This document shows, piece by piece, positions 1 to 50,737 of a stretch of 64,000 nt of DNA; the first letter of the stretch is position 1; every line of letters begins with the position of its first letter. The notes under the pieces were generated by a model that was not told where the DNA came from, did not search any database, and saw only the letters and a program-made list of their open reading frames with translations. The stretch is from contig OZ218954.1 of the NCBI GenBank assembly GCA_965112735.1, forward strand, positions 2,542,001 through 2,606,000, in the 5' to 3' direction. This DNA is from Phaeosaccion multiseriatum (taxonomy: Eukaryota; Protista; Ochrophyta, other classes). A program made the position numbers and the translations under genes.

Positions 1-2998
1 CCCCTGGTTGGGCCCAAAGCAAGCATTTGCGGGGCACAAACAGCCTAAATGACGGGTTGGTGTGTCATACCATGCTTGCGCAGAGCATTGGATCATCACG
101 ACTGGCCTATCCGACACACTGCATCGCCACAACAGCGCCCACTGGGACCTTGAATGGGCTCAACAGGCCCAATCTGGCCCCTGGTTGGGCCCAAAGCAAG
201 CATTTGCGGGGCACAAACAGCCTAAATGACGGGTTGGCGTGTCATACCATGCCCGCGCAGAGCATCGGATCATCACGACTGGCCTATCCGACACACTGCA
301 TCGCCACAACAGCGCCCAGTGGGACATTGAATGGGCTCAACAGGCCCAATCTGGCCCCTGGTTGGGCCCAAAGCAAGCATTTGCGGGGCACAAACAGCCT
401 AAATGACGGGTTGGTGTGTCATACCATGCTTGCGCAGAGCATCGGATCATCACGACTGGCCTATCCGACACACTGCATCGCCACAACAGCGCCCACTGGG
501 ACCTTTAATGGGCTCAACAGGCCCAATCTGGCCCCTGGTTGGGCCCAAAGCAAGCATTTGCGGGGCACAAACAGCCTAAATGACGGGTTAGTGTGTCATA
601 CCATGCCTGCGCAGAGCATCGGATCATCACGACTGGCCTATCCGACACACTGCATCGCCACAACAGCGCCCAGTGGGACCTTGAATGGGCTCAACAGGCC
701 CAATCTGGCCCCTGGTTGGGCCCAAAGCAAGCATTTGCGGGGCACAAACAGCCTAAATGACGGGTTGGTGTGTCATACCATGCCCGCGCAGAGCATCGGA
801 TCATCACGACTGGCCTATCCGACACACTGCATCGCCACAACAGCGCCCAGTGGGACCTTGAATGGGCTCAACAGGCCCAATCTGGCCCCTGGTTGGGCCC
901 AAAGCAAGCATTTGCGGGGCACAAACAGCCTAAATGACGGGTTGGCGTGTCTCAACATGCCCGCGCAGAGCATCGGATCATCACGACTGGCCTATCCGAC
1001 ACACTGCATCGCCACAACAGCGCCCAGTGGGACATTGAATGGGCTCAACAGGCCCAATCTGGCCCCTGGTTGGGCCCAAAGCAAGCATTTGCGGGGCACA
1101 AACAGCCTAAATGACGGGTTGGTGTGTCATACCATGCCCGCGCAGAGCATCGGATCATCACGACTGGCCTATCCGACACACTGCATCGCCACAACAGCGC
1201 CCACTGGGACCTTTAATGGGCTCAACAGGCCCAATCTGGCCCCTGGTTGGGCCCAAAGCAAGCATTTGAGGGGCACAAACAGCCTAAATGACGGGTTAGT
1301 GTGTCATACCATGCCTGCGCAGAGCATCGGATCATCACGACTGGCCTATCCGACACACTGCATCGCCACAACAGCGCCCAGTGGGACCTTGAATGGGCTC
1401 AACAGGCCCAATCTGGCCCCTGGTTGGGCCCAAAGCAAGCATTTGCGGGGCACAAACAGCCTAAATGACGGGTTGGCGTGTCATACCATGCCCGCGCAGA
1501 GCATCGGATCATCACTACTGGCCTATCCGACACACTGCATCGCCACAACAGCGCCCAGTGGGACCTTGAATGGGCTCAACAGGCCCAATCTGGCCCCTGG
1601 TTGGGCCCAAAGCAAGCATTTGCGGGGCACAAACAGCCTAAATGACGGGTTGGTGTGTCATACCATGCCCGCGCAGAGCATCGTATCAGCACGACTGGCC
1701 TATCCGACACACTGTATCGCCACAACAGCGCCCAGTGGGGTGACGAATACGCTCAACAGGCCCAATCTGGCCCCTGGTTGGGCCCCAAGCAAGCATTTGC
1801 GGGGCACAAACAGCCTGAATGACGGTTTGGCGTGTCATACCATGCCCGCGCAGAGCATCGTATCAGCACGACTGGCCTATCCGACACACTGCATCGCCAC
1901 AACAGCGCCCACTGGGTCGTCGAATGGGCTCAACAGGCCCAATCTGGCCCCTGGTTGGGCCCAAAGCAAGCATTTGCGGGGCACAAACAGCCTAAATGAC
2001 GGGTTGGCGTGTCTCAACATGCCCGCGCAGAGCATCGGATCATCACGACTGGCCTATCCGACACACTGCATCGCCACAACAGCGACCAGTGGGACCTTGA
2101 ATGCGCTCAACAGGCCCAATCTGGCCCCTGGTTGGGCCCAAAGCAAGCATTTGCGGGGCACAAACAGCCTAAATGACGGGTTGGCGTGTCTCAACATGCC
2201 CGCGCAGAGCATCGGATCATCACGACTGGCCTATCCGACACACTGCATCGCCACAACAGCGCCCAGTGGGACCTTGAATGGGCTCAACAGGCCCAATCTG
2301 GCCCCTGGTTGGGCCCAAAGCAAGCATTTGCGGGGCACAAACAGCCTAAATGACGGGTTGGTGTGTCATACCATGCTTGCGCAGAGCATTGGATCATCAC
2401 GACTGGCCTATCCGACACACTGCATCGCCACAACAGCGCCCACTGGGACCTTGAATGGGCTCAACAGGCCCAATCTGGCCCCTGGTTGGGCCCAAAGCAA
2501 GCATTTGCGGGGCACAAACAGCCTAAATGACGGGTTGGTGTGTCATACCATGCTTGCGCAGAGCATCGGATCATCACGACTGGCCTATCCGACACACTGC
2601 ATCGCCACAACAGCGCCCACTGGGACCTTTAATGGGCTCAACAGGCCCAATCTGGCCCCTGGTTGGGCCCAAAGCAAGCATTTGCGGGGCACAAACAGCC
2701 TAAATGACGGGTTAGTGTGTCATACCATGCCTGCGCAGAGCATCGGATCATCACGACTGGCCTATCCGACACACTGCATCGCCACAACAGCGCCCAGTGG
2801 GACCTTGAATGGGCTCAACAGGCCCAATCTGGCCCCTGGTTGGGCCCAAAGCAAGGATTTGCGGGGCACAAACAGCCTAAATGACGGGTTACTGTGTCAT
2901 ACCATGCCCGCGCAGAGCATCGGATCATCACGACTGGCCTATCCGACACACTGCATCGCCACAACAGCGCCCACTGGGACGTCGAATGGGCTCAACAG
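1..2998. repeat. 177-bp satellite array, left segment (~17 monomers; continues beyond window start)
   Basis: Unit cccctggttgggcccaaagcaagcatttgcggggcacaaacagcctaaatgacggg...ctcaacaggcccaatctggc recurs every 177 nt (59-aa period in the ORF track); ends at ...ctcaacag (2998). Confidence 0.99.
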
Positions 2999-3466
2999 CC
3001 TGTTCAGCAGCGCAGCAACGGAACTTTGTTTCTCGCGGAACAGAGACGAGGAAGAGGTGGGAGACATGGGAGCCAGCAGGGCGAAGCGTCAGCGTAGGTG
3101 CTTGGTACCGCCCCAAGGGGGGGGGTCCCCTCTGGGGAGATGTACAGTATGTCAGTGAAGCAGGGAATTTAGATTTTTCAGAAGAGGAGAGACCTTGGCG
3201 TGTGCTGTCACTTACTGAGGCGCCGGAGACAGAGCCCAGGAAGAGTGGAGCACACTGTCAAGGAGGAGAGTAGATACTGGTGTGGTGGAAAGCGAGCCTC
3301 TTGTCCTGGGCCCGGACAGAGCGCTTGTGTCGGCCAAGGGGACCCGCCTGGTGTTGAGTACCGGGGTCCTCGTGGGCGAGGGAAGGAGAGATAGGGAGAC
3401 TGTGTCTGGTGTTGAGTGCCGACAGTGTCCACGGTGTTGAGTGCCGGAACTCTTCTTTTCTTTCCC
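2999..3466 (+). repeat. Split direct repeat A1 (~468 bp)
   Basis: cctgttcagcagcgcagcaacgg...ctcttcttttctttccc; same as A2 by eye except one G in a G-run. Confidence 0.97.
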
Positions 3467-5759
3467 TTTGCCGGTGTTGTGGGGCTCTACGGCTTAGGAG
3501 CGGTGTCTGGTGTTGAGTGCCGACCGCCTCCCCGGTGTTGAGTGCCGGCGCCTTTTGCCCTCTTCGCCCTTTCTTCCTTGCTGGTATCGCCGTAGGATCC
3601 GCGTCCGGTGTTGAGGCCGACGCCCTACTCATCTCTCCGCCCTCTCCTCTCTCCCGTGGCCCAAGGTTTGGGGGGTGTGGTCCACGGCATTTTTTGTCTT
3701 TTTACGAGACGAAAGGGGCTCCCGGGTGACGGCAGGCCCCTTAGCTCTTCCAGGTGTTTGTCTGTATGTTTGTCTGTGTATGTCCAGACGGTGTTTCTGT
3801 GTGTAGGGTGCGTATTTCCTGTGTTTGGCGTGCGAATATGCGCCTCCTCCGCAAAGGAGGCTGGCTCTGCGCGCGGTGACAACAGCGGCTCATCCCTCGC
3901 CATTCCGGCCCTCAACGGCGGGCGGGGCAGTCCTAGGCAACAGCAGCCGTGGTCACTGCCCCTACACACGATGTGTGTTTGTATCTGTGTGTGCTGGTCT
4001 GCGTCTGTGTGTGCTAGTGTGCGTTTGTGGGTGCTGGTGTCCCTGTATTGTGCCTTTGTCTATATCTGTGTGCCTGTGAATGTTTGTGTACGTCTGCGTG
4101 TTTACGTGTACCTCCCTTGTTGTTGGAGTGTCTCCCACCTACAACAGCAGTATGGCCAGAAGGAGGCGTACGTGGTCGCCACTGAGCTTGCCTGCAGTCT
4201 CTCTGGATGGGTGGGGGCGTAGCTGACCTTCGATACGGGAGCTCGCACGGCTCACCTCCGGCAGCTACATCCGAGAGACATATCGGGCCGAGGAGCGGCG
4301 AAGGGAAGGAGACGGACTACAGCTGTACCTCCCTCACCATCTCGAACGCATGGGAGGGGGAGGGGGGGGGTCCGATGGAGGCTCAGCTCTCAGGACAAAC
4401 AGCAACAGCAAAGCAAATAGTACGAGCGTCAAAGGTGGCAGCATGGATGCGAAGGCAGCTATTCGGGCTGTTGGAAGGAACCGGAGAGCCCTTTGATCGT
4501 GGTTGGCGCCTCGAGTTTGCGTGTGGAGCGGATATGGGACCTGTGGCCATAACAGCGAACCGATGGGCGACAAGAGAGGCACAGCATACGAGGGAGAATT
4601 GAGAATTGGAAGGCGGCATTGGGAGTGTACGGTACTCACATTTCGGGAGGTACGGCAGCGTTTGGTGACCGTCTACGGAGTGTACGGCGATGTACGTCGT
4701 CCGGTGCTGAAGGAAATTGGGGCATTGAGCAATCTGGCTACTTATCTGTAATGGACGGCGGAAGCATGATGTTTGGTCGTTCACAACAGCTATGGAGTGG
4801 AAGTCGGGGCCTGCCTGTGATGCAGAAGAGAAGGTGATGGTTTTTTCGGCGTTGGGGCTCGTGAGCGGTGTGAACATGGAGGATGGGAGAGAACAGGGCT
4901 TGTGGCTCGCTCTGCTTGCACGACTTACTTCCGGTAGTATGGATGGACTACCCTCTTGCTATCGTGCTCGGTGGTCGAGGGATTGGTGCCGCCGCGCTTG
5001 AGATATCGGACTTGTTCATTTTTCGGGCCCGCAGCACCGAGGTGTTTGGCATTCGCTGTATTGCTCAGCTGGTACAGCGGAAGTCCACGGCGGACGGTTG
5101 GAATCGCCGCAGAGTGGTCTTGGTACGGCGTGTGCAGAAGGGTAACTTCTACGAGTTGATGTTCGAAGAGCTTGGAGCGGAAAACATGAGCGCTTCTGTG
5201 AGGGCATTTTCGGCTTTTCTACAGGGGTTGGATATATGGACACTTTTGGATCTGTGATTCCGAAAAGAATCCGAATTTGCTGGTTTGGGCGCGCTTTGCT
5301 GCTTCCACCCGCCGTGCCAGAGGACTGCGCAGTGTATTTCGCTCAGTGGCTCGCCCCCCCCCCAGCACACCATCCCAAGCGAGTGGGGGGTGTGTGATGG
5401 TCAGCAGGGGGCGTGCGAAGGGACCTCTTCAAAGGACACTGAATCTGCCCGTGGCGACACCAGCGGCTCCTCCCTCGCCATCATTCCTCCCCCAGCAGCG
5501 GGGAGCGCAGCCCTTGGCAACAGCACCAGCAGCCCTACACCGGTACACGCGGCGGGTGTTTGTATGTGTGTGTGTACTGGTGTGCGTCTGTGTCTACTGT
5601 TGCCCCTGTATGTGTATTATTTTGTCTGTGTGCGTATGAATGTTTGTGTATCTTTGTGTTTTGTGTACCGGCCGACTACGATCGGGAGAGTGGGCTCCCG
5701 ACTAGGCTGGGGCAGGTGCTGCTGCACCCTCGCAGCGCACCGGTGGGTACTCGGATGGG

Positions 5760-6179
5760 TGGGGGTGAAGCGGGACTTGGGGTGCTCACTGCGGTGGCAC
5801 CCCAAGCTCCACTACATCCGAAACCCGGTGCCCGCCTCCCTCCATGGAGGCGGCCCCCTTGGAGGCGCTCTGCGCTCCCAAGGTGGGAGTCCCTCACGGG
5901 ACTGCCCCCCCCTACTAATGATGAGTCCTTCCCCCAACGTTAGCTACCCCTGGTCCACGACCTCTCCACCTGCGGAGCAGGTGGCCACTTGGGAGTCCAG
6001 CCCTATTCCTCTTGGCCTCGAACAGCCGGCTACGGCGTGGATGTGGATAGTCCTCAGCTTGCATACTGCGACGCCTTGGAGCGGGAGTCGGACATCTCCC
6101 GGGCCCTCGCCTACGACTGAAGGGAGGAGGCCTCTCACTGGCTTCCCACCTTCGCCCGAGCGCCGCGACGGCGCGAAAG
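5760..6179 (+). repeat. Split direct repeat B1 (420 bp)
   Basis: tgggggtgaagcgggacttgg...cgacggcgcgaaag; same as 6695-7114 (offset 935) and abuts A2 directly. Confidence 0.97.
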
Positions 6180-6646
6180 CCTGTTCAGCAGCGCAGCAAC
6201 GGAACTTTGTTTCTCGCGGAACAGAGACGAGGAAGAGGTGGGAGACATGGGAGCCAGCAGGGCGAAGCGTCAGCGTAGGTGCTTGGTACCGCCCCAAGGG
6301 GGGGGTCCCCTCTGGGGAGATGTACAGTATGTCAGTGAAGCAGGGAATTTAGATTTTTCAGAAGAGGAGAGACCTTGGCGTGTGCTGTCACTTACTGAGG
6401 CGCCGGAGACAGAGCCCAGGAAGAGTGGAGCACACTGTCAAGGAGGAGAGTAGATACTGGTGTGGTGGAAAGCGAGCCTCTTGTCCTGGGCCCGGACAGA
6501 GCGCTTGTGTCGGCCAAGGGGACCCGCCTGGTGTTGAGTACCGGGGTCCTCGTGGGCGAGGGAAGGAGAGATAGGGAGACTGTGTCTGGTGTTGAGTGCC
6601 GACAGTGTCCACGGTGTTGAGTGCCGGAACTCTTCTTTTCTTTCCC
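6180..6646 (+). repeat. Split direct repeat A2
   Basis: Copy of 2999-3466; junction gcgcgaaag|cctgttcag joins the element's right end sequence to its left end sequence. Confidence 0.97.
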
Positions 6647-6694
6647 ACCCACCCACCCTCAGTCTTAGTTTTAGTTTTAGATACTCATACATTA

Positions 6695-7114
6695 TGGGGG
6701 TGAAGCGGGACTTGGGGTGCTCACTGCGGTGGCACCCCAAGCTCCACTACATCCGAAACCCGGTGCCCGCCTCCCTCCATGGAGGCGGCCCCCTTGGAGG
6801 CGCTCTGCGCTCCCAAGGTGGGAGTCCCTCACGGGACTGCCCCCCCCTACTAATGATGAGTCCTTCCCCCAACGTTAGCTACCCCTGGTCCACGACCTCT
6901 CCACCTGCGGAGCAGGTGGCCACTTGGGAGTCCAGCCCTATTCCTCTTGGCCTCGAACAGCCGGCTACGGCGTGGATGTGGATAGTCCTCAGCTTGCATA
7001 CTGCGACGCCTTGGAGCGGGAGTCGGACATCTCCCGGGCCCTCGCCTACGACTGAAGGGAGGAGGCCTCTCACTGGCTTCCCACCTTCGCCCGAGCGCCG
7101 CGACGGCGCGAAAG
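6695..7114 (+). repeat. Split direct repeat B2 (element 3' terminus)
   Basis: Copy of B1, separated from A2 by a 48-bp spacer (acccacccaccctcagtcttagttttagttttagatactcatacatta); satellite resumes at 7115. Confidence 0.97.
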
Positions 7115-10100
7115 GCCCAATCTGGCCCCTGGTTGGGCCCAAAGCAAGCATTTGCGGGGCACAAACAGCCTAAATGACGGGTTGGTGTGTCATACCATGC
7201 CTGCGCAGAGCATCGGATCATCACGACTGGCCTATCCGACACACTGCATCGCCACAACAGCGCCCACTGGGACCTTGAATGGGCTCAACAGGCCCAATCT
7301 GGCCCCTGGTTGGGCCCAAAGCAAGCATTTGCGGGGCACAAACAGCCTAAATGACGGGTTGGTGTGTCATACCATGCCTGCGCAGAGCATCGGATCATCA
7401 CGACTGGCCTATCCGACACACTGCATCGCCACAACAGCGCCCACTGGGACCTTGAATGGGCTCAACAGGCCCAATCTGGCCCCTGGTTGGGCCCAAAGCA
7501 AGCATTTGCGGGGCACAAACAGCCTAAATGACGGGTTAGTGTGTCATACCATGCTTGCGCAGAGCATCGGATCATCACGACTGGCCTATCCGACACACTG
7601 CATCGCCACAACAGCGCCCAGTGGGACGTCGAATGGGCTCAACAGGCCCAATCTGGCCCCTGGTTAGGCCCAAAGCAATGCGGGGCACACACAGCCTAAA
7701 TGACGGGTTGGCGTGTCATACCATGCCCGCGCAGAGCATCGTATCAGCATGACTGGCCTATCCGACACACTGCATCGCCACAACAGCGCCCAGTGGGGTG
7801 ACGAATACGCTCAACAGGCCCAATCTGGCCCCTGGTTGGGCCCAAAGCAAGCATTTGCGGGGCACAAACAGCCTAAATGACGGGTTGGCGTGTCATACCA
7901 TGCCCGCGCAGAGCATCGGATCATCACGACTGGCCTATCCGACACACTGCATCGCCACAACAGCGCCCAGTGGGACCTTGAATGGGCTCAACAGGCCCAA
8001 TCTGGCCCCTGGTTGGGCCCAAAGCAAGCATTTGCGGGGCACAAACAGCCTAAATGACGGGTTAGCGTGTCTCAACATGCCCGCGCAGAGCATTGGATCA
8101 TCACGACTGACCTGTCCGACACACTGCATCGCCACAACAGCGCCCAGTGGGACCTTGAATGGGCTCAACAGGCCCAATCTGGCCCCTGGTTGGGCCCAAA
8201 GCAAGCATTTGCGGGGCACAAACAGCCTAAATGACGGGTTGGCGTGTCATACCATGCCCGCGCAGAGCATCGGATCATCACGACTGGCCTATCCGACACA
8301 CTGCATCGCCACAACAGCGCCCAGTGGGACCTTGAATGGGCTCAACAGGCCCAATCTGGCCCCTGGTTGGGCCCAAAGCAAGCATTTGCGGGGCACAAAC
8401 AGCCTAAATGACGGGTTAGTGTGTCATACCATGCTTGCGCAGAGCATCGGATCAGCACGACTGGCCTATCCGACACACTGCATCGCCACAACAGCGCCCA
8501 CTGGGACGTCGAATGGGCTCAACAGGCCCAATCTGGCCCCTGGTTGGGCCCAAAGCAAGCATTTGCGGGGCACAAACAGCCTAAATGACGGGTTGGCGTG
8601 TCATACCATGCCCGCGCAGAGCATCGGATCATCACTACTGGCCTATCCGACACACTGCATCGCCACAACAGCGCCCAGTGGGACCTTGAATGGGCTCAAC
8701 AGGCCCAATCTGGCCCCTGGTTGGGCCCAAAGCAAGCATTTGCGGGGCACAAACAGCCTAAATGACGGGTTAGTGTGTCATACCATGCTTGCGCAGAGCA
8801 TCGGATCAGCACGACTGGCCTATCCGACACACTGCATCGCCACAACAGCGCCCACTGGGACGTCGAATGGGCTCAACAGGCCCAATCTGGCCCCTGGTTG
8901 GGCCCAAAGCAAGCATTTGCGGGGCACAAACAGCCTAAATGACGGGTTGGTGTGTCATACCATGCTTGCGCAGAGCTTTGGATCAGCACGACTGGCCTAT
9001 CCGACACACTGCATCGCCACAACAGCGCCCACTGGGACCTTGAATGGGCTCAACAGGCCCAATCTGGCCCCTGGTTGGGCCCAAAGCAAGCATTTGCGGG
9101 GCACAAACAGCCTAAATGACGGGTTGGTGTGTCATACCATGCCTGCGCAGAGCATCGGATCATCACGACTGGCCTATCCGACACACTGCATCGCCACAAC
9201 AGCGCCCACTGGGACGTCGAATGGGCTCAACAGGCCCAATCTGGCCCCTGGTTGGGCCCAAAGCAAGCATTTGCGGGGCACAAACAGCCTAAATGACGGG
9301 TTGGTGTGTCATACCATGCCTGCGCAGAGCATCGGATCATCACGACTGGCCTATCCGACACACTGCATCGCCACAACAGCGCCCACTGGGACCTTGAATG
9401 GGCTCAACAGGCCCAATCTGGCCCCTGGTTGGGCCCAAAGCAAGCATTTGCGGGGCACAAACAGCCTAAATGACGGGTTAGTGTGTCATACCATGCTTGC
9501 GCAGAGCATCGGATCATCACGACTGGCCTATCCGACACACTGCATCGCCACAACAGCGCCCAGTGGGACGTCGAATGGGCTCAACAGGCCCAATCTGGCC
9601 CCTGGTTAGGCCCAAAGCAATGCGGGGCACACACAGCCTAAATGACGGGTTGGCGTGTCATACCATGCCCGCGCAGAGCATCGTATCAGCATGACTGGCC
9701 TATCCGACACACTGCATCGCCACAACAGCGCCCAGTGGGGTGACGAATACGCTCAACAGGCCCAATCTGGCCCCTGGTTGGGCCCAAAGCAAGCATTTGC
9801 GGGGCACAAACAGCCTAAATGACGGGTTGGCGTGTCATACCATGCCCGCGCAGAGCATCGGATCATCACGACTGGCCTATCCGACACACTGCATCGCCAC
9901 AACAGCGCCCAGTGGGACCTTGAATGGGCTCAACAGGCCCAATCTGGCCCCTGGTTGGGCCCAAAGCAAGCATTTGCGGGGCACAAACAGCCTAAATGAC
10001 GGGTTAGCGTGTCTCAACATGCCCGCGCAGAGCATTGGATCATCACGACTGACCTGTCCGACACACTGCATCGCCACAACAGCGCCCAGTGGGACCTTGA

Positions 10101-28901: not shown

Positions 28902-30744
28902 CTTTCGGCGCTCAGACGAAGGTGGTAAGCCACTGCATGAGAGGCCTCCCTCGAGTCGTAGGCGAGGACCAGGGAGATGTCCAAACTCCTGCTCCAAGGC
29001 GTCGCAGCACACTGAGCGCTATCTAAATCTACGCCGTCGCCGCGGTTGTGAGAGACCAAGTGCTATAGACCTGCACCTCCAAGTGGCCACCTGCATGCTC
29101 CAAGTAAAAAGGTTTCTCATCATACTATTATAGAGGGGGCAGTCGTGAGAGAGACTCAAACCGCGGATGCGCAGAGCGCCTCCAAGGGGGCCGCCCCCTG
29201 CATATATGGGGGGGGGGCGGCTAGCAGGTTCCGGATGTAGTGGGGCTTGGGGTGCTACCGCAGTGAGCACACCAAGTCCCGCTTCACCCCCACCCATCCG
29301 AGTACCCACAGGTGCGCTGCGGCCGCAGCAGCACCCGCCCCGACCTCTAGTCGTGAGCTCGCTCTTCCGATCGGAGTCGGCCTCGCGATATCGACAATCC
29401 GTCTCCTTCCCTTGACCGCTCCTCGGCCCAATATGTCTCTCGTATGGAGCTGCCATGGGAGAGCTGCACGAGCCCTCGCATCGAAGGCCAGCTTCGCCCC
29501 CACCTACCTAGATGAGACCACATGGTGCCGTGGTGGTGCAGCTTGCCTGTTCCCTGTCGAGCCCATCGGCCGCCACGTTCGCCTCCTGCTGACGATCCAT
29601 CTCACGCCCCTCCGCACAGCAGCTGGTTGTTGTACACACCACAAAAACAAGTGTGATATACATACACACAAACGCACACATACACGGACACACACAGACA
29701 CACCAACACACACACAGACGCACGCCACCACACACAGATATACACACACACGCCGTGTGTGTACGGACGCTGGGGCTGTCGCAGCTGTTGCCAAGGCGGA
29801 CTGCCCTCCCCGCTTAGAGGACCAGCAGCCCCAAAACTGAAGCGAGCGCCAGTCAGCCCCACTGGTAGCAAGAGCTGTAGCACCGCCACTCCGTAGAGTG
29901 GGGGAACTGATCCGCCGGGCAGAGTCCCTCCCGGCCCTTGCCGCACCAGCTTTGAGGGCTCTGCTGACCTGCTGAGAAGTGATAGACGTCCTCCGCCCTG
30001 CCGACTAGTCGACGTAGGAGGGGAGTAGGTTGCCTTTCCTCCCATCAAAGCGGAGCACGTCTCCGGTCGCTCCTAGAAGAGCCACGCCTACCGGGAGCTG
30101 CGTCACGCTGTCGCCATCTTTGAGTTTGTGGCTCTGTAGAAGCAATACTGCACCTGCCTGCCAACCGCAGGGCCCTTTCTTCCCTCGCGAGATAAAAGGG
30201 CATTGACCCTCCAACGTCGACCCCTTGTTGTGCTGCTCCTCGCGACACCAGACAAGAAAAGTCATGAAGATCTCGGCGTTCTGGGGGTCGTCGACTCCAA
30301 ATAGTAGGGGTGGCATACAGTGAGGTCCGAATCGTGGGCAACCATTACTCATTGTAACAGCTACCCCTCTAGACAACCCACAAATAGGGGTCCACAGTAC
30401 CCCCACTAGTTCGCAGAACTCGATCCATTGGCGTTGGACCAATGAGTAGCGATCCAGGGTGCTAGGGAGGAGACCGCTGGTTGCGGCTGACCGAGCAGGG
30501 CGGAGACAACGGTGTCCAAGATGGTTGAGTCCGGCGCCACTTGCGTCCACAGGCTGTAGGTGAGGAGCAATAGGAGAGAAGCTGTCCGTACCAATGAGAT
30601 GCTCAATCCAAGCACGGCTGAGCTCATCAGAGATGAGGTTGGTAGGTCCAGGGATATCAATGGTGTCGAGGCTGCAACGAGTGCCGATCCACAAGAGGCC
30701 CACCAGCCCAGCTAAGCCGTTGCTGATGGAGCTGGCCTGACAGT
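28902..30744 (-). mobile_element. Degenerate YR retrotransposon (RNase H C-terminus + tyrosine recombinase + 3' region with B-like repeat)
   Basis: Minus strand reads IDIPGPTNLISDELSR (RNase H end) then YR motifs. 28902-29520 is a diverged reverse-complement match to element segments ~4205-4317 and ~5670-6179, ending in the same cgaaag. Confidence 0.85.
29815..30490 (-). pseudogene. Tyrosine recombinase pseudogene (DIRS/Ngaro type)
   Basis: N-terminal GLLPSTLDRYSLVQRQWIEFC and FMTFLVWC...KGSTLEG. Past a TAG at 30005, the same frame gives VSRALKAGAARAG...ISSPTLRSGGATALATSGADWRSLQFWGCWSS (degenerate HSLRxGGAT and GRWxS box II). Internal deletion and stop. Confidence 0.85.
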
Positions 30745-31250
30745 CATCCCCTCAACACGATTCGCATCAGCCGGTGAGAATGCCCACAACCCGCGGCAAC
30801 CCCTTGCGGCAGGCGAGTACATTCATATAACCCCTCCTCAATAGTGCTGTTATAATGCCCCGACGTGACATCCGAAATCGAAACAAGACACGCATTTACC
30901 ACGCACGCAAATGTGTCCTCTATACCATGGGTATAGGCACCTTCGGCACCACCGTCTGCGAATTCAGCTTGATATTATTGCATGTCAACCGTACTGCACC
31001 TGAAGGCTTGAGCACAGCGACCAGAGGCGCGGCCCAGTTGGATTCGGAGGGGCGCAGAATCCCTTGGGCGACCAAACGATCCACTTCTACCTGTATCTGC
31101 TGCGTTATTAGAGGGGAATACCGGTATGGGCGTGAGGCTTGGGGTGTTGCGTACCGCTTCAGCCGAATGGCGAAGGGGGGGGTGTCACACCTTCCCACAT
31201 CCCACCGATCTTTGGAGAAGCTCTCCAAGTGATGGAGTAGCAGCGCCAGC
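30744..31250 (-). pseudogene. Reverse transcriptase fragment, Ty3/Gypsy-like
   Basis: DVGRCDTPPFAIRL...RPYRYSP...EVDRLVAQGILRPSESNWAAPLVAVLKPSGAVRL; after a frameshift IEDTF...SDVTSGHYN...GLYECTRLPQGVAAG...RLMRIVLRG*. Truncated before YxDD. Confidence 0.88.
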
Positions 31251-32589: not shown

Positions 32590-34083
32590 CTACCGTTTCC
32601 TTCCGAGATACGCCGCTTTCCACGCGTTGAGATCGACAGGGTGGCTCTCTGGTGTTGCGTTCACATCCTCCCGCCAGATTTTGATCGTCTTGTCAGCCTC
32701 ACACGTGATCAAGCGCGAGCCAGACTTGTCGAAGGATGAAGCGTATATACCTGCCTCGGAATCGAGGGAACCTGGCTGCACGATTGTGTCCATCTTCTGG
32801 AAGGCGTGGCCCGTCTTGTAGTCCCACAGGGTCATGGAGCCATCGTCTCCGCCGGAGAACAGGACGTTATCCTCATTGATGGAAAGAGTATTGATGACAG
32901 AGTTGTGGCCAGACAGGTTGTGGAGAAAGACACCATCTCGCGCCTGCCACTTCTTCAAATTGAACGCAGAAGCAGATACAAAAGTGAATTCTCGAGGATG
33001 CATCTTCAGGTCGCGAACGGCTTTCTTGTGGTGCGTCAGGGTGGTAAGAGCCTGTAGGTAGAGGAACCGGGGCGAAAGAGAGGGCTGATTCAGGGACAGA
33101 ACAAAGAGCGATGCAATAAACAAACGAGCGCGCCCAAAACCTTTCTCGCGACACACCTTTCCAGCGACGAGGTCCCACAACTTGATTTGCGCGTCGTACG
33201 ACCCTGTGATGATCTGAGGGTCCACTGCATTGGTCGCAATGGCGCCTACCGCGTTAGTGTGCCCCCCTAGACAGTGCACCTGTTTCCTCGTGCGCATATC
33301 CCACACTCGAGCGACGGCATCGCGCCCTCCAGACACCAACACATCCAGAGTGGGATGGAGAGAGAGTGCAAAGATGCCGCTCAAATGGCCGTGGTAGTTC
33401 CGGATGACCTTATTGTACTCCAAATCCCAGCACATGATTTTCTTGTCTTCGCCTGCCGAGAAAAGGTATGGGTGTCGGTCGCTCACTTGGAGAGCCCGTA
33501 CGCTGTTGACATGGCCCGTCAGAGTCAACTTCAGTCCGCCCTCCGCCCCGGCGCAACACTTTGCGAAATCCCACACCTGTGAGACACGGGGAGCGGGGGG
33601 GGGGGATACGAGCAAAAGAGTTGGGTTCCTCACTCACCCATCTTTGTTTACGTCCTTTGAGCTATTATAGAAGGTCTCACTCACCTTTATGGTTCGGTCC
33701 CCAGCTCCGGTGACGAACCACTCATTCCCCGCGTCGAAGGCAATGGCCCTTACCCAGCCCAGGTGGCCAGACACGACACTCTGAAGCTTCCAAGGGGCAT
33801 GCCAGTCAGGAGCGGGCACCTTCGTAGGGCCTTTGGTCGCCAATACCAGTGCAGCCCCGGTCGTTGTGCTTACACTACCAGCCTTGACGATGCTATTCTG
33901 CGTCGCGGTCTTGTTCGTTGCAAGTACCAGCGCCCCACTCTGCTGCTGGTCACTCAAAGACGCCCCCCCTCTACGTCCTGATATTACATCCGCGACCTTT
34001 TGCTCCTGCTTCTCCTCCGTAATACGTTGGATCACTGCGGTAACGTTGCTCGTATCCAAAGTGGCTGTTCTCTCATCCTCTTC

Positions 34084-41100: not shown

Positions 41101-41920
41101 AAGAGCAACCAGACATGTACGTCCCACCAGCTCGCAATACACTCTCTCACTTTAGAACGGACTGTGGAGTGAGATTAGTGCACTCCATCTCGAGCATTCC
41201 CTCCTGCAACACAAAGTGCTTCCTCCACGCATCCACCAAATTGGCCTTCAGTCCACACGCCGGAGGGCCGAGGTCGAACAGTCCCCCTACTCCTCCGTGG
41301 ATCTCAAAGGAAGGCACGATGAACATGCGGCGAAGGACAACCTGGTCGAAGACTGCGAGACTCCTTATGTAAGACTCGAGGCGCAAGCGGGTGGGCAGCG
41401 ACAGTAAGGATGTCGTAAGTTACCTTTCTTGTCGAAGGTGCTCTGCTCGCCCAGAGCCAAGGTAGCGGCTGCCAATTCAGCCTTTAGACGTAGCAAGGTC
41501 TCGACTGCTTCCTTAACAACCTCCGGCGCCGTTCCGTTCTTCTTCATTTCCCTCACACTCGCGCCCTGCTTGGCTACCTGGGCACCAAGCGAGTCCACAT
41601 CGGCCCCTTCCCCCTCATCCTTACTTGCTACTACAGCTGCTGGTGCTTCCGCTTGCACCGGCACCGCTGGGGCAGGTGTGCTCTCGGTAGGCTCCGAGGA
41701 AGAAAACACCGAGAATCGCGTCGTGCTGTTCGTCCCCATCATCTTGTTGCAATCGAAATCTGGGGAGGGAGATAATTGGGGGGATAGGGGGTTAGTTGGC
41801 GACGACGCCCCGCTCGGAGGCCCAACTCGTAAACAAGCACACACACTGAGAGACATCGAGGGAGGTGGATGGAGCACCTGTCGCGCCTTCTGGACCTGAC
41901 ATGTCTTCTAACGCGACCAT
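38178..41920 (-). CDS. GARS1: Glycine--tRNA ligase (eukaryotic type, WHEP domain); start uncertain (41920, 41902 or the MM near 41740)
   Basis: [14 protein letters not shown]...AVETLLRLK; [69 protein letters not shown]; last exon ...[10 protein letters not shown]...TAA 38178. Confidence 0.96.
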
Positions 41921-42000
41921 CCCAGGGTGCGGAGGAGGATGACGACCTTAGCAGCCCAGCCTGCCCTCCTCCGTGCATAGCCACGGCTCGAGAGGCGACG

Positions 42001-43248
42001 ATGGCGTTTCGCGGTTTGCGGGACTCGCTCGCACTGCCGGAGACTCAGGACGCGGCGCGGCAGGGTGGGTTGGGTCCTGCCTTGCTACAAGTCGTCCTGG
42101 AGCAGGGCTCTCACGTTGGTACCGCGAGCGACACCGTGGGCGACCCCGTGGCCGAGGCAAGCGTCGTGGAGTTGCGAAGGATGCTTCTGGCGGCGCTGCA
42201 ATGCTGCTGTAACTATGTGGCGTCGAATGTGGTCAATCGAGAAGAAACATGGAGCTCGTTGTTTCCTGACGGCTTCACTCGACTCTTACTCTCCTACCGG
42301 ACTTACAGGAAAGGGTTGGCGTATGTTGTTGCAATGATCAACACCTGTGTGGCTACGTTTGAGAGAGGAGGAGAAGACGGTGCTCCACCATCAGGTCACC
42401 TCGCCCAGTTAGCTTCGCACCGTCCTCTGATTGGCCTTCTTGCCCGATCAGTGGCTCCTGGCGCCACTGCTGCTGCCACTGCGGATGCCGAAGACTCCGA
42501 CCCCGCCTTCGAATGGTTTTACATCTTGTGGAGCCAGCTTTGTTCCCAGGGACTGTGTAAAACAGTGTACGAAGGTGTGGGTGTCAGTCATTCCCCGTCA
42601 GCAGTAAGTTCGGAACAGCTTGTTTGTCTTCGCATGGTCGAAGCAGTGGTCTGCGACGTGCATGCCTTTGAGAAAGGCAAGGAGAGAGCTTCGGTCCACA
42701 CCATAATGGCCTGGCTGGTCGAGCTGCTGTCGAAAATGCCGCACTCGCGCGAACGTCTGACGGAGGGAGAGGACTTTGAGATTGTTCAACAGAGGATGCA
42801 AGAAGAAGCGACAAGGTGGATTCTGAGGGGGCTGTCGGGAGCGCTGCAAGTGTGGGGAGGGGGCAAGTTGCCGAATGTCCTCGAGAGCGAAGGACATGCC
42901 ACCCTGGAACTTTTGGTGACGACGTGTCTTGACATGATGACAGCGTTGGGCTCGCCCGCTGTCAGATCAGGGTTGGATGGTGGTTCGGAACGACGAAGCT
43001 CCGCCCCCCCCGCCCCCCCAGACGGGCGAAAGGTCGACGTTATGAAGGTGATTTGCAACGCAGCGTTCAGGTACCCTGCTGCCCAGGATGTGATGAGAGA
43101 GAAGGGGGGGCTGGTGGTTGTCCTGAATCAGTTCAATATCGAAGAGGCGAACCCCTTTCTTGGAGAATGGGCCACTCTTGCACTCCGAAATCTCTGTGAG
43201 GGAAATCCTACCAATCAATCGCGCGTGTCTCAGTTGCAAAAACGATAG
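42001..43248 (+). CDS. ATXN10: Ataxin-10 domain protein (single exon; upstream in-frame ATG at 41869)
   Basis: C-terminal QDVMREKGGLVVVLNQFNIEEANPFLGEWATLALRNLCEGNPTNQ is the ataxin-10 signature. Confidence 0.88.
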   Translation: MAFRGLRDSLALPETQDAARQGGLGPALLQVVLEQGSHVGTASDTVGDPVAEASVVELRRMLLAALQCCCNYVASNVVNREETWSSLFPDGFTRLLLSYRTYRKGLAYVVAMINTCVATFERGGEDGAPPSGHLAQLASHRPLIGLLARSVAPGATAAATADAEDSDPAFEWFYILWSQLCSQGLCKTVYEGVGVSHSPSAVSSEQLVCLRMVEAVVCDVHAFEKGKERASVHTIMAWLVELLSKMPHSRERLTEGEDFEIVQQRMQEEATRWILRGLSGALQVWGGGKLPNVLESEGHATLELLVTTCLDMMTALGSPAVRSGLDGGSERRSSAPPAPPDGRKVDVMKVICNAAFRYPAAQDVMREKGGLVVVLNQFNIEEANPFLGEWATLALRNLCEGNPTNQSRVSQLQKR

Positions 43249-49255: not shown

Positions 49256-49258
49256 GTG

Positions 49259-50737
49259 ATGGATCTTCTCCGCTCATTGTCAAAGAAGAAGAATGACGCT
49301 TTCACAATCAGGGACGGAAAGCACAGCCCTTACCATCGAAGAGGAGACGTGAGGAAAGCGGAGCTTGAGCTCCGCAAGAAGGCACAGGAAGAGCTCGACG
49401 CGAAGAGAGAGGGAAGAGCAAAGTATGGGAACGGGCGAGAAAGTAAGGAAGTCGAGCGTGAAGGTACACCGCCCGTCGCTGGGGTGGTGTCCAGCGACAA
49501 TGAAGCCGTCGCGGAACCGATTCAGGCAGCAGTATCAGGAAGAGCAGCAGAAGCAGTAGAGAAAGTTGAGCAAGAGGAGTTGACTCGTCGCTTGCGCCGC
49601 ATGGGGGAGCCTATCTGCCTGTTTGGAGAGAGCGTCTCGATGCGGCAAGCTCGCCTCCGTTTGCTCGAAGATCGGGAGGAGCACAATGACGATTTTACTC
49701 TCGGACATGGGCACAATGTCAAGAACACCTTTCTAGAAAGGACTGAGGAGGCTGAAGGTGGGGATGCCTCCCGGAACAAGAAGAGTGAGGAGAGCGATAG
49801 TGACCATGAAGTCGAGGGAGGGTCGGTATCGGGGGCGTCTACTGGCCGCAAGAGAAGTCGCGCCTCAGCCACGGGGGCAGCGGACGAGGACAACATGGAG
49901 GCGCACAAGCTCATCAGGCACTTTTTCAAGGTTGGTTGGATCATCTTGTATAGACTTTCCTCCCCTCACACCACCCGAAAGGGCGTCTCTCTTAACTCCC
50001 TTTTGGGAGGAACTTCTTACAACCTTCCTCCTTCCGTGTGGTATGTATGCAATGTACCCAGGCTCTCTTGCGTAGATGGGAAATGGACTTAAACAGCAGG
50101 CCAGAAGCAGTTCGGAATTCAACTCAGGGGCGTATGGAGACCAAGTCTCAGAAGCAGACCAAGGACTACATGCGCCCCCTCTTCAAGGCGTGCAAGCAAA
50201 AGGCTCTGGACCCGGGCATCAAGGCCAACTTGGTGAAGATGATCAAGTTCATCAAAGAGGGAGAATTCGTCAGAGCGCATGACGTGTACCTCCAGACGGC
50301 GATCGGGAATGCGGCCTGGCCCATCGGTACGTACGAGTAAACAAGAAAGGCTCCCTCTCTTCCCTGCTTCGCAACTCTCTGCTTTTTTTCCCTCCTCCTC
50401 ACTACCCCCTGGCCCATCGGTAGGAATGAACATGACTCCCTCTCTTTCTCGCTTCGTAGGGCCTCTAATTCCTGACTCTTTTCTCCTCCTCACTAGCTCA
50501 CTCTCGTTCTCGCTTCGTAATCCCCGAATTACTCTCTTCTCCTCACTACCCCCCTCCCCAGGCATCACTATGGTGGGAATTCATGAACGCAGCGGACGGG
50601 AAAAGATTAACAGCAGTAAGGTGGCTCACATCATGAACAATGAGGCCCAACGGAAGTACCTCGTGAGCATCAAGAAGCTTATGACCTACGAGCAAGACCA
50701 GCGCGACGACGTTCTCCCCAGCAAGAAAGTTCGATAG
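49259..50737 (+). CDS. PRPF18: Pre-mRNA splicing factor 18
   Basis: [16 protein letters not shown] (PRP4-like motif), [10 protein letters not shown]|[15 protein letters not shown]...[13 protein letters not shown]; 3 exons. Confidence 0.95.

Follow-up and report, generated by a model that had tools for sequence, protein, structure and literature searches.

What is the sequence that interrupts an otherwise continuous tandem satellite of the alga Phaeosaccion multiseriatum, how was it inserted, and what relation does it have to the satellite around it? The stretch considered here, called the window, comprises 64,000 nucleotides (nt) of contig OZ218954.1 of the assembly GCA_965112735.1 (C5:2542001-2606000, contigs being labelled C1, C2 and so on). 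It opens with an array of 177-bp monomers (1-28707), whose sole break is an insert of 4116 bp at 2999-7114 (Table 1). This insert is very probably a recently inserted, non-autonomous member of a family of split-direct-repeat tyrosine-recombinase retrotransposons, Ngaro-like in architecture, which retains the two repeats A and B, the junction of B with A and a spacer of 48 bp, the rest being non-coding filler.

Anatomy, ends and family of the insert

The insert is organized in the order A1, internal region, B1, A2, spacer and B2, with B1 joined directly to A2. B1 and B2 are identical at 420 of 420 positions, and A2 differs from A1 by one G fewer in a G run, so that the repeats inside this copy are one indel apart in 887 nt; moreover, the sequence at the B1/A2 junction equals the right end of the element fused to its left end. 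Across the insert the monomer phase shifts by 4293, that is, 4116 + 177; the joined flanks form a 22-base motif found 112 times in the window, and excision in silico restores a 177-bp monomer. A first-pass annotation of the window had proposed this layout with its single G-run difference, the equivalence of the internal junction with the fused ends and the rejoining of the flanks into a perfect monomer, and all of this is borne out. The six-part architecture is seen again, with different flanks, at at least six other loci, and the spacer is 100% conserved in every copy that carries it.

In order to set the true ends, the genome (67 Mb, 22 contigs) was searched with A, B and the internal region, and 16 independent left and 16 right junctions, 14 from this family and two from coding relatives, were compared. 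AG precedes CCTGTT at all 16 left junctions; on the other side, the sequence is invariant through GCGCGAA and the following two bases vary. Because AG is constant on the left while the two bases past the right end vary, AG is element sequence, and the element runs from AG..CCTGTT to GCGCGAA. The AG had previously been regarded as common to target and circle junction, but such a microhomology is a coincidence of the window copy: in its target, AG also follows the insertion site, so that the boundary can be drawn 2 nt further to the left with an equal fit (2997-7112). Seven empty sites, on C5, C12, C15 (two), C4, C7 and C13, were reconstructed. Neighbouring monomers served as the model for five of them; for those on C7 and C13 a related satellite of another chromosome was used. 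In the five based on same-chromosome satellite, the two target bases that flank the element are exactly contiguous, nothing having been gained or removed at the site, and the sites on C7 and C13 are consistent with this. The lack of a target-site duplication, claimed earlier for the window copy, is thus confirmed, and extends to the other copies for which a site could be rebuilt.

Table 1. Coordinates in the window of the satellite array, of the insert with its parts and of a coding relative.
Feature	Position	Strand	Remarks
177-bp satellite array left of the insert	1-2998	+	16.9 monomers, 96% matches
Whole non-autonomous element, limits of the first-pass annotation	2999-7114	+	4116 bp; 2997-7112 by the rule from other copies
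A1, left split repeat	2999-3466	+	468 bp; first 30 nt 100% conserved in coding relatives
Internal region	3467-5759	+	2293 bp; without enzyme homology
Segment common to another repeat family at 87-88%	4386-5342	+	~957 bp, internal bases 920-1876
124-codon open frame	4883-5257	+	Open in most copies; probably a relic
B1, internal copy of the right split repeat	5760-6179	+	420 bp
28-nt B1/A2 junction	6164-6191	+	Putative circle junction/recombination site; putative break between 6177 and 6178
A2, internal copy of the left split repeat	6180-6646	+	467 bp
Spacer between A2 and B2	6647-6694	+	48 bp, AT-richer, GC 0.375
B2, right terminal repeat	6695-7114	+	420 bp, identical to B1
177-bp satellite array right of the insert	7115-28707	+	122 monomers
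Decayed, 5'-truncated coding relative at the array border	28906-30734	-	B-like repeat (72%), RNase H end, recombinase with internal deletion

The genome search revealed about 20 full-length copies, 97-100% identical, together with many partial ones. Identity with the window copy reaches 99.96% for a copy on C4 (2237 nt compared) and 99.86% for one on C15 (2856 nt), and is 99.1-99.5% for the others; given this identity and the near-identical repeats within the window copy, the family has been active very recently. No enzyme homology was found in the element's own frames. The description of the insert as young and enzyme-less therefore stands. The 124-codon frame was considered as coding capacity and rejected: its variants comprise 4 synonymous and 12 nonsynonymous codons and three copies have a 1-nt gap in this stretch (likely a frameshift), so that, in view of its neutral-looking variation and these indels, it is read as a relic. 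Nothing informative emerged in A, B and the spacer as to polyadenylation or TATA-like signals, nor is there a stable fold at the junction (z-score 0.59).

Derivative forms accompany the full-length copies. They include A-internal-B (C15:2032794-2035972 and C4:191033-194211), solo A-spacer-B (C13 and C7), the multimer A-internal-B-A-internal-B-A-spacer-B (C12) and a form ending in B-A-spacer-B-A-spacer-B (C4). To judge from their sequences, these are exactly the reciprocal products predicted for unequal exchange between A1 and A2 or B1 and B2, and a recombinase acting on the repeated junction could yield the same forms. At C7:831765-840580 a solo A-spacer-B and ~2.1 kb of 187-bp satellite are repeated in tandem at least three times with a period of roughly 2.9-3.1 kb; by this amplification, a transposon remnant has become part of a higher-order satellite unit. 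At C14:1009590-1022653, a truncated copy and satellite are repeated every 2859 bp.

As for the internal region, it contains two diverged copies (78-81%) of a TG-rich module of about 400 nt (3846-4230 and 5424-5778), each comprising, in this order, a GC-rich stretch, a TG-rich microsatellite-like tract and a G-rich motif, and the second copy immediately precedes B1. The make-up of this region suggests that 3' untranslated sequence of an older relative supplied the filler. The repeat family that matches 4386-5342 (for example C11:2177298-2178243 and C3:93252-94208) keeps a 127-codon open frame and is present in about one to a few copies per satellite-rich region of other chromosomes. In the array itself, one monomer in the stretch 7507-7860 has a 5-bp deletion (spacing 172 and not 177).

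Coding relatives sharing the junction

Enzymes are encoded by relatives of the element. The decayed relative of Table 1, lying about 200 bp past the satellite array, keeps the last ~110 amino acids (aa) of an RNase H frame and a recombinase without about aa 153-273; the region upstream of its B resembles the 3' part of the element's internal region. With this relative as a probe, intact ones were found in satellite-rich regions of C15 (two), C8 and C10, and their polymerase frames are 99-100% identical to one another (n = 4). About 4.8 kb of these putative helpers was read, the 5' ~1.9 kb (A1 and open reading frame 1, ORF1) and the spacer and B2 being outside that stretch.

The helper polymerase frame, of 785-790 aa, has reverse-transcriptase and RNase H motifs. 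An exhaustive protein search returned 1159 homologues, while a word-based search gave no match; in a cluster look-up, the ten best homologues were metagenomic proteins only. A profile of 21 polymerase sequences matches the reverse transcriptase of HIV-1 (E = 4e-8) and its catalytic Asp/Glu columns are invariant. The end of the RNase H frame overlaps by 145 nt the start of a recombinase frame of 376 aa, which scores 27.4 bits with PF00589 (cut-off 27.1) and in which the His-x-x-Arg, Trp and Tyr can be matched to XerD by a weak alignment (E 0.04-0.06); the Arg of box I (RVSE), outside the XerD alignment, was read by eye from the translation. Upstream of the polymerase, an open frame of 166 aa with no known domain occupies the position of a Gag gene. 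No match to a methyltransferase was found in the helpers, in which there is no room for one between RNase H and recombinase, and no other integrase in the ~4.8 kb read.

The recombinase stop codon abuts a B-like repeat, itself joined directly to an A-like repeat. Overall, the helper repeats are 68% (B) and 77% (A) identical to those of the element; the conservation peaks at the junction, with 87% in the last 60 nt of B and 100% in the first 30 nt of A, and three coding relatives carry the 28-nt junction without any change; in a fourth relative, which is more diverged, one base is mismatched. Conservation distributed in this way is the pattern predicted for a shared cis-acting site.

The class of the element can be read from these data. 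The arrangement A1...B1A2...B2, with A1 equal to A2 and B1 to B2, is present in the window copy (the A pair being one G apart), a tyrosine recombinase with its catalytic residues is present in the junction-sharing relatives and not in the window copy, and reverse transcriptase and RNase H are present in relatives of the family. The hallmarks of long terminal repeat (LTR) retrotransposons, namely identical LTRs at the ends, a 4-6-bp duplication and a DDE integrase, are not found. What defines the PAT/Toc/kangaroo groups is that their coding members possess a methyltransferase domain, whereas Ngaro has none and has its internal repeats downstream of the recombinase (PMC4157794); since the helpers have no room for a methyltransferase, and their internal repeats lie downstream of the recombinase, they are Ngaro-like in this structural scheme, the placement being by structure and not by tree. 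The first-pass annotation had named the class as PAT/TOC1/kangaroo/Ngaro: the recombinase and the reverse transcriptase/RNase H of the relatives support the class in its Ngaro-like form, and the PAT/TOC1/kangaroo label falls with the methyltransferase.

By analogy with the models for DIRS-1 and Ngaro (PMC7192593, PMC8547959), we infer a cycle in which the element would be transcribed from A1 into B2 and its RNA copied into DNA in trans, the reverse transcriptase/RNase H being supplied by intact relatives that share the satellite blocks. The internal B1/A2 copy would then guide the repair and joining of the ends, giving a circle in which GCGCGAA is followed by AGCCTG, and the tyrosine recombinase of the relatives would carry out a conservative exchange between this circle junction and an A-rich (CAAA-like) chromosomal site, in which nothing is duplicated or lost. 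Later unequal recombination between A1 and A2 or B1 and B2 would give rise to solo A-spacer-B, A-internal-B and tandem multimers.

Two further observations concern coding sequences in the same regions. A second coding family (C12:1644549-1645385, C7:822594-823430, C2:3734202 and C1:5463115), with a polymerase 65-66% identical to that of the first helper and a 772-aa open frame, shows no A/B-like junction in the parts examined. In the window, a 102-aa frame on the minus strand (30920-31228) has a motif typical of the start of retroelement reverse transcriptases and is not matched by the helper polymerase; it may be a fragment of another kind of retroelement.

Satellite niche and rival explanations

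Tandem-repeat analysis of the flanks showed, on both sides of almost every copy, satellites with a period of 165-194 bp or dimers of 342-373 bp; being 67-77% similar to the C5 monomer, these are chromosome-specific variants of one family. Fifteen of the 16 independent left junctions, distributed on 13 chromosomes, are inside such arrays (binomial P ~5e-19 even with satellite set at 5% of the genome), and on each of 16 contigs the matches to the element, its coding relatives and a third repeat family are gathered, a few outliers apart, in a single region of 30-100 kb. The satellite setting of the window copy is therefore shared by nearly all of the family, as the tabulated flanks of the other copies make clear. 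The lone exception is a young copy, C5:2499487-2503039, whose flanks are non-satellite (left junction C5:2503039). The satellite blocks, one per chromosome, are probably the centromeres. In the window, the block abuts gene-rich DNA, since ordinary genes start about 4 kb past the array: a WD40 protein (32590-33633, minus strand), an ataxin-10-domain protein (41869-43248, plus strand) and a PRP4-like motif (49256-50092, plus strand).

Within the monomer, insertion sites map to roughly positions 0-67 of 177, in both orientations and with reuse, the mapping being approximate since monomers differ: C5 and C3 both have an insertion at position 0, four insertions fall in positions 32-37, and three, in reverse orientation, are at position 38. 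The left flank of the target is CAAA-like, echoing the element's own GCGAA end, and A occupies 29 of the 48 bases at target positions -1 to -3 (P = 2e-7 against 25%). Insertion has, therefore, a preferred sequence context and a strong niche with several preferred positions, and not the one precise monomer site that had been proposed on the basis of the window copy.

The nature of the insert could be explained otherwise in three ways. Repeats within satellite arrays are hard to assemble and the window copy is known from the assembly alone, so that an error of assembly has to be considered, as has a segmental duplication of local origin that resembles a split-repeat element; however, the same six parts with exact termini are found at no fewer than six other loci, on other chromosomes and between different flanks, and the flanks of the insert rejoin to a perfect monomer, which makes this explanation extremely improbable. 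An equally slight chance is left to an ordinary LTR retrotransposon, rearranged as a permuted tandem fragment, in which B+A would be the LTR: B+A does resemble an 887-bp LTR and solo forms exist, but every copy begins with A and ends with B and none has B+A at both ends, there is no target duplication, and the coding relatives carry a tyrosine recombinase and, in the ~4.8 kb read (the 5' ~1.9 kb lying outside), no other integrase. Improbable, if less extremely so, is a DNA-only, Crypton-like element, whose recombinase would excise and reintegrate a circle without reverse transcription. Insertion without duplication and an internal site resembling a circle junction suit any tyrosine-recombinase element, and the window copy encodes no polymerase; nevertheless, in the relatives sharing its junction, the recombinase frame is immediately preceded, with an overlap, by an intact frame for reverse transcriptase/RNase H, the internal B1/A2 copy is needed in the retrotransposon model to rebuild the ends and would be useless to a cut-and-paste circle, and there are some 20 copies as well as derivatives.

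Some results weigh against the retrotransposon reading or limit parts of it. Pfam detects neither RVT_1 nor RNase H at threshold in the helper polymerase, RVT_1 appearing, below threshold, on two of its homologues; only short inverted repeats, and no symmetric recombinase core site, were found at the junction; and mobilisation in trans by this helper family is no more than plausible, because its A and B are just 77% and 68% identical to those of the element outside the junction. Mobilisation in trans, the RNA and circular intermediates, active targeting and the centromeric identity of the blocks are inferences from the assembled sequence. In addition, the enrichment in satellite could reflect survival and not targeting: the class would be right, but insertions would land anywhere and persist only in gene-free, recombination-poor satellite blocks. 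Gene-dense algal genomes would purge insertions elsewhere, the young copy with non-satellite flanks exists, and multiple monomer sites are used in both orientations. On the other hand, copies that are 99-100% identical have had little time for purging, all but one of the junctions lie within satellite, different chromosomes have insertions at homologous positions of the monomer and the left flanks have the CAAA-like bias, so that we consider survival as the sole cause rather unlikely. A tentative proposal, to which we would give somewhat less than an even chance, is that the recombinase, or a Gag-like partner, actively steers integration into the 165-194-bp satellites through a loose CAAA-type pseudo-site in centromeric chromatin, helper and hitch-hiker forming a centromere-specific pair of tyrosine-recombinase retrotransposons that remodel and homogenise algal centromeres. 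If this were true, the solo elements amplified within higher-order repeats would be one example of such remodelling.

Relation to known elements and significance

TOC1 of Chlamydomonas reinhardtii has the layout A..BA-spacer-B, as in the window element. It has been described as a non-autonomous DIRS retrotransposon (PMC9940879), and PAT-like DIRS elements are reported in volvocine algae (PMC8226300). Set beside the window element by description alone, TOC1, a green-algal element, is similarly enzyme-less and belongs to the same order of tyrosine-recombinase retrotransposons, but it is not reported as satellite-bound, and for the methyltransferase of the PAT/Toc/kangaroo groups there is no room in the helpers found here. 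Closer in structure are the Ngaro retrotransposons, known for example from Cafeteria burkhardae: the layout, the order of reverse transcriptase/RNase H and tyrosine recombinase and the solo AB derivatives match their description (PMC8547959), no methyltransferase is found in the part of the helpers read, and some Ngaro types also favour a particular genomic niche. Unlike these, the window copy has no genes at all and has 48 bp of spacer between A2 and B2, the divergence of the helper polymerase puts it beyond the reach of Pfam RVT_1, and the niche is a satellite family with one block per chromosome.

As regards the niche, DIRS-1 of Dictyostelium discoideum is confined to centromeric clusters and forms the centromeres; an internal copy of its end-to-end junction has been proposed as the template for repairing the ends, and its insertion, for which a few shared bases act as a guide, leaves no target duplication (PMC3950715, PMC7192593). 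However, the termini of DIRS-1 are inverted repeats, a complementary region lies inside the element, a methyltransferase is encoded, and insertion is mainly into other DIRS-1 copies, which make up the centromere, whereas the family described here sits inside a true tandem satellite. Tyrosine-recombinase elements are also reported in chordate centromeric satellites (bioRxiv 10.64898/2026.09.17.752431), and a centromere coloniser of this kind is consequently less exceptional than the first-pass annotation had supposed. The LTR and long interspersed nuclear element (LINE) colonisers of centromeres (CRM and Athila of plants; ZeppL of Chlamydomonas and Coccomyxa, PMC8226300) resemble the present family in forming one cluster per chromosome, in or beside centromeric repeats, and in having non-autonomous partners, but they rely on a DDE integrase or on target-primed reverse transcription and leave target duplications or 5' truncations, neither of which is seen in the window element. 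We found no publication that describes a tyrosine-recombinase retrotransposon in an algal satellite; the family is thus a new one of a known kind of element, in a rarely documented niche.

To our knowledge, retrotransposons with a tyrosine recombinase are rare and little work has been devoted to how they integrate, and the green-algal centromeres known to us so far are LINE- or LTR-rich, or cryptic. This genome is a clean natural data set, in which young copies, exact empty sites, a conserved 28-nt junction, intact helpers with a gene-less passenger and all the reciprocal products are found together, so that the choice of target and the role of the junction become directly testable. If the satellite blocks are the centromeres, Phaeosaccion multiseriatum would be a tractable alga whose centromere has been colonised by a conservative, site-specific recombination system and not by integrase or LINE elements; active targeting of the centromeric satellite, if true, is the point that could raise this significance further.

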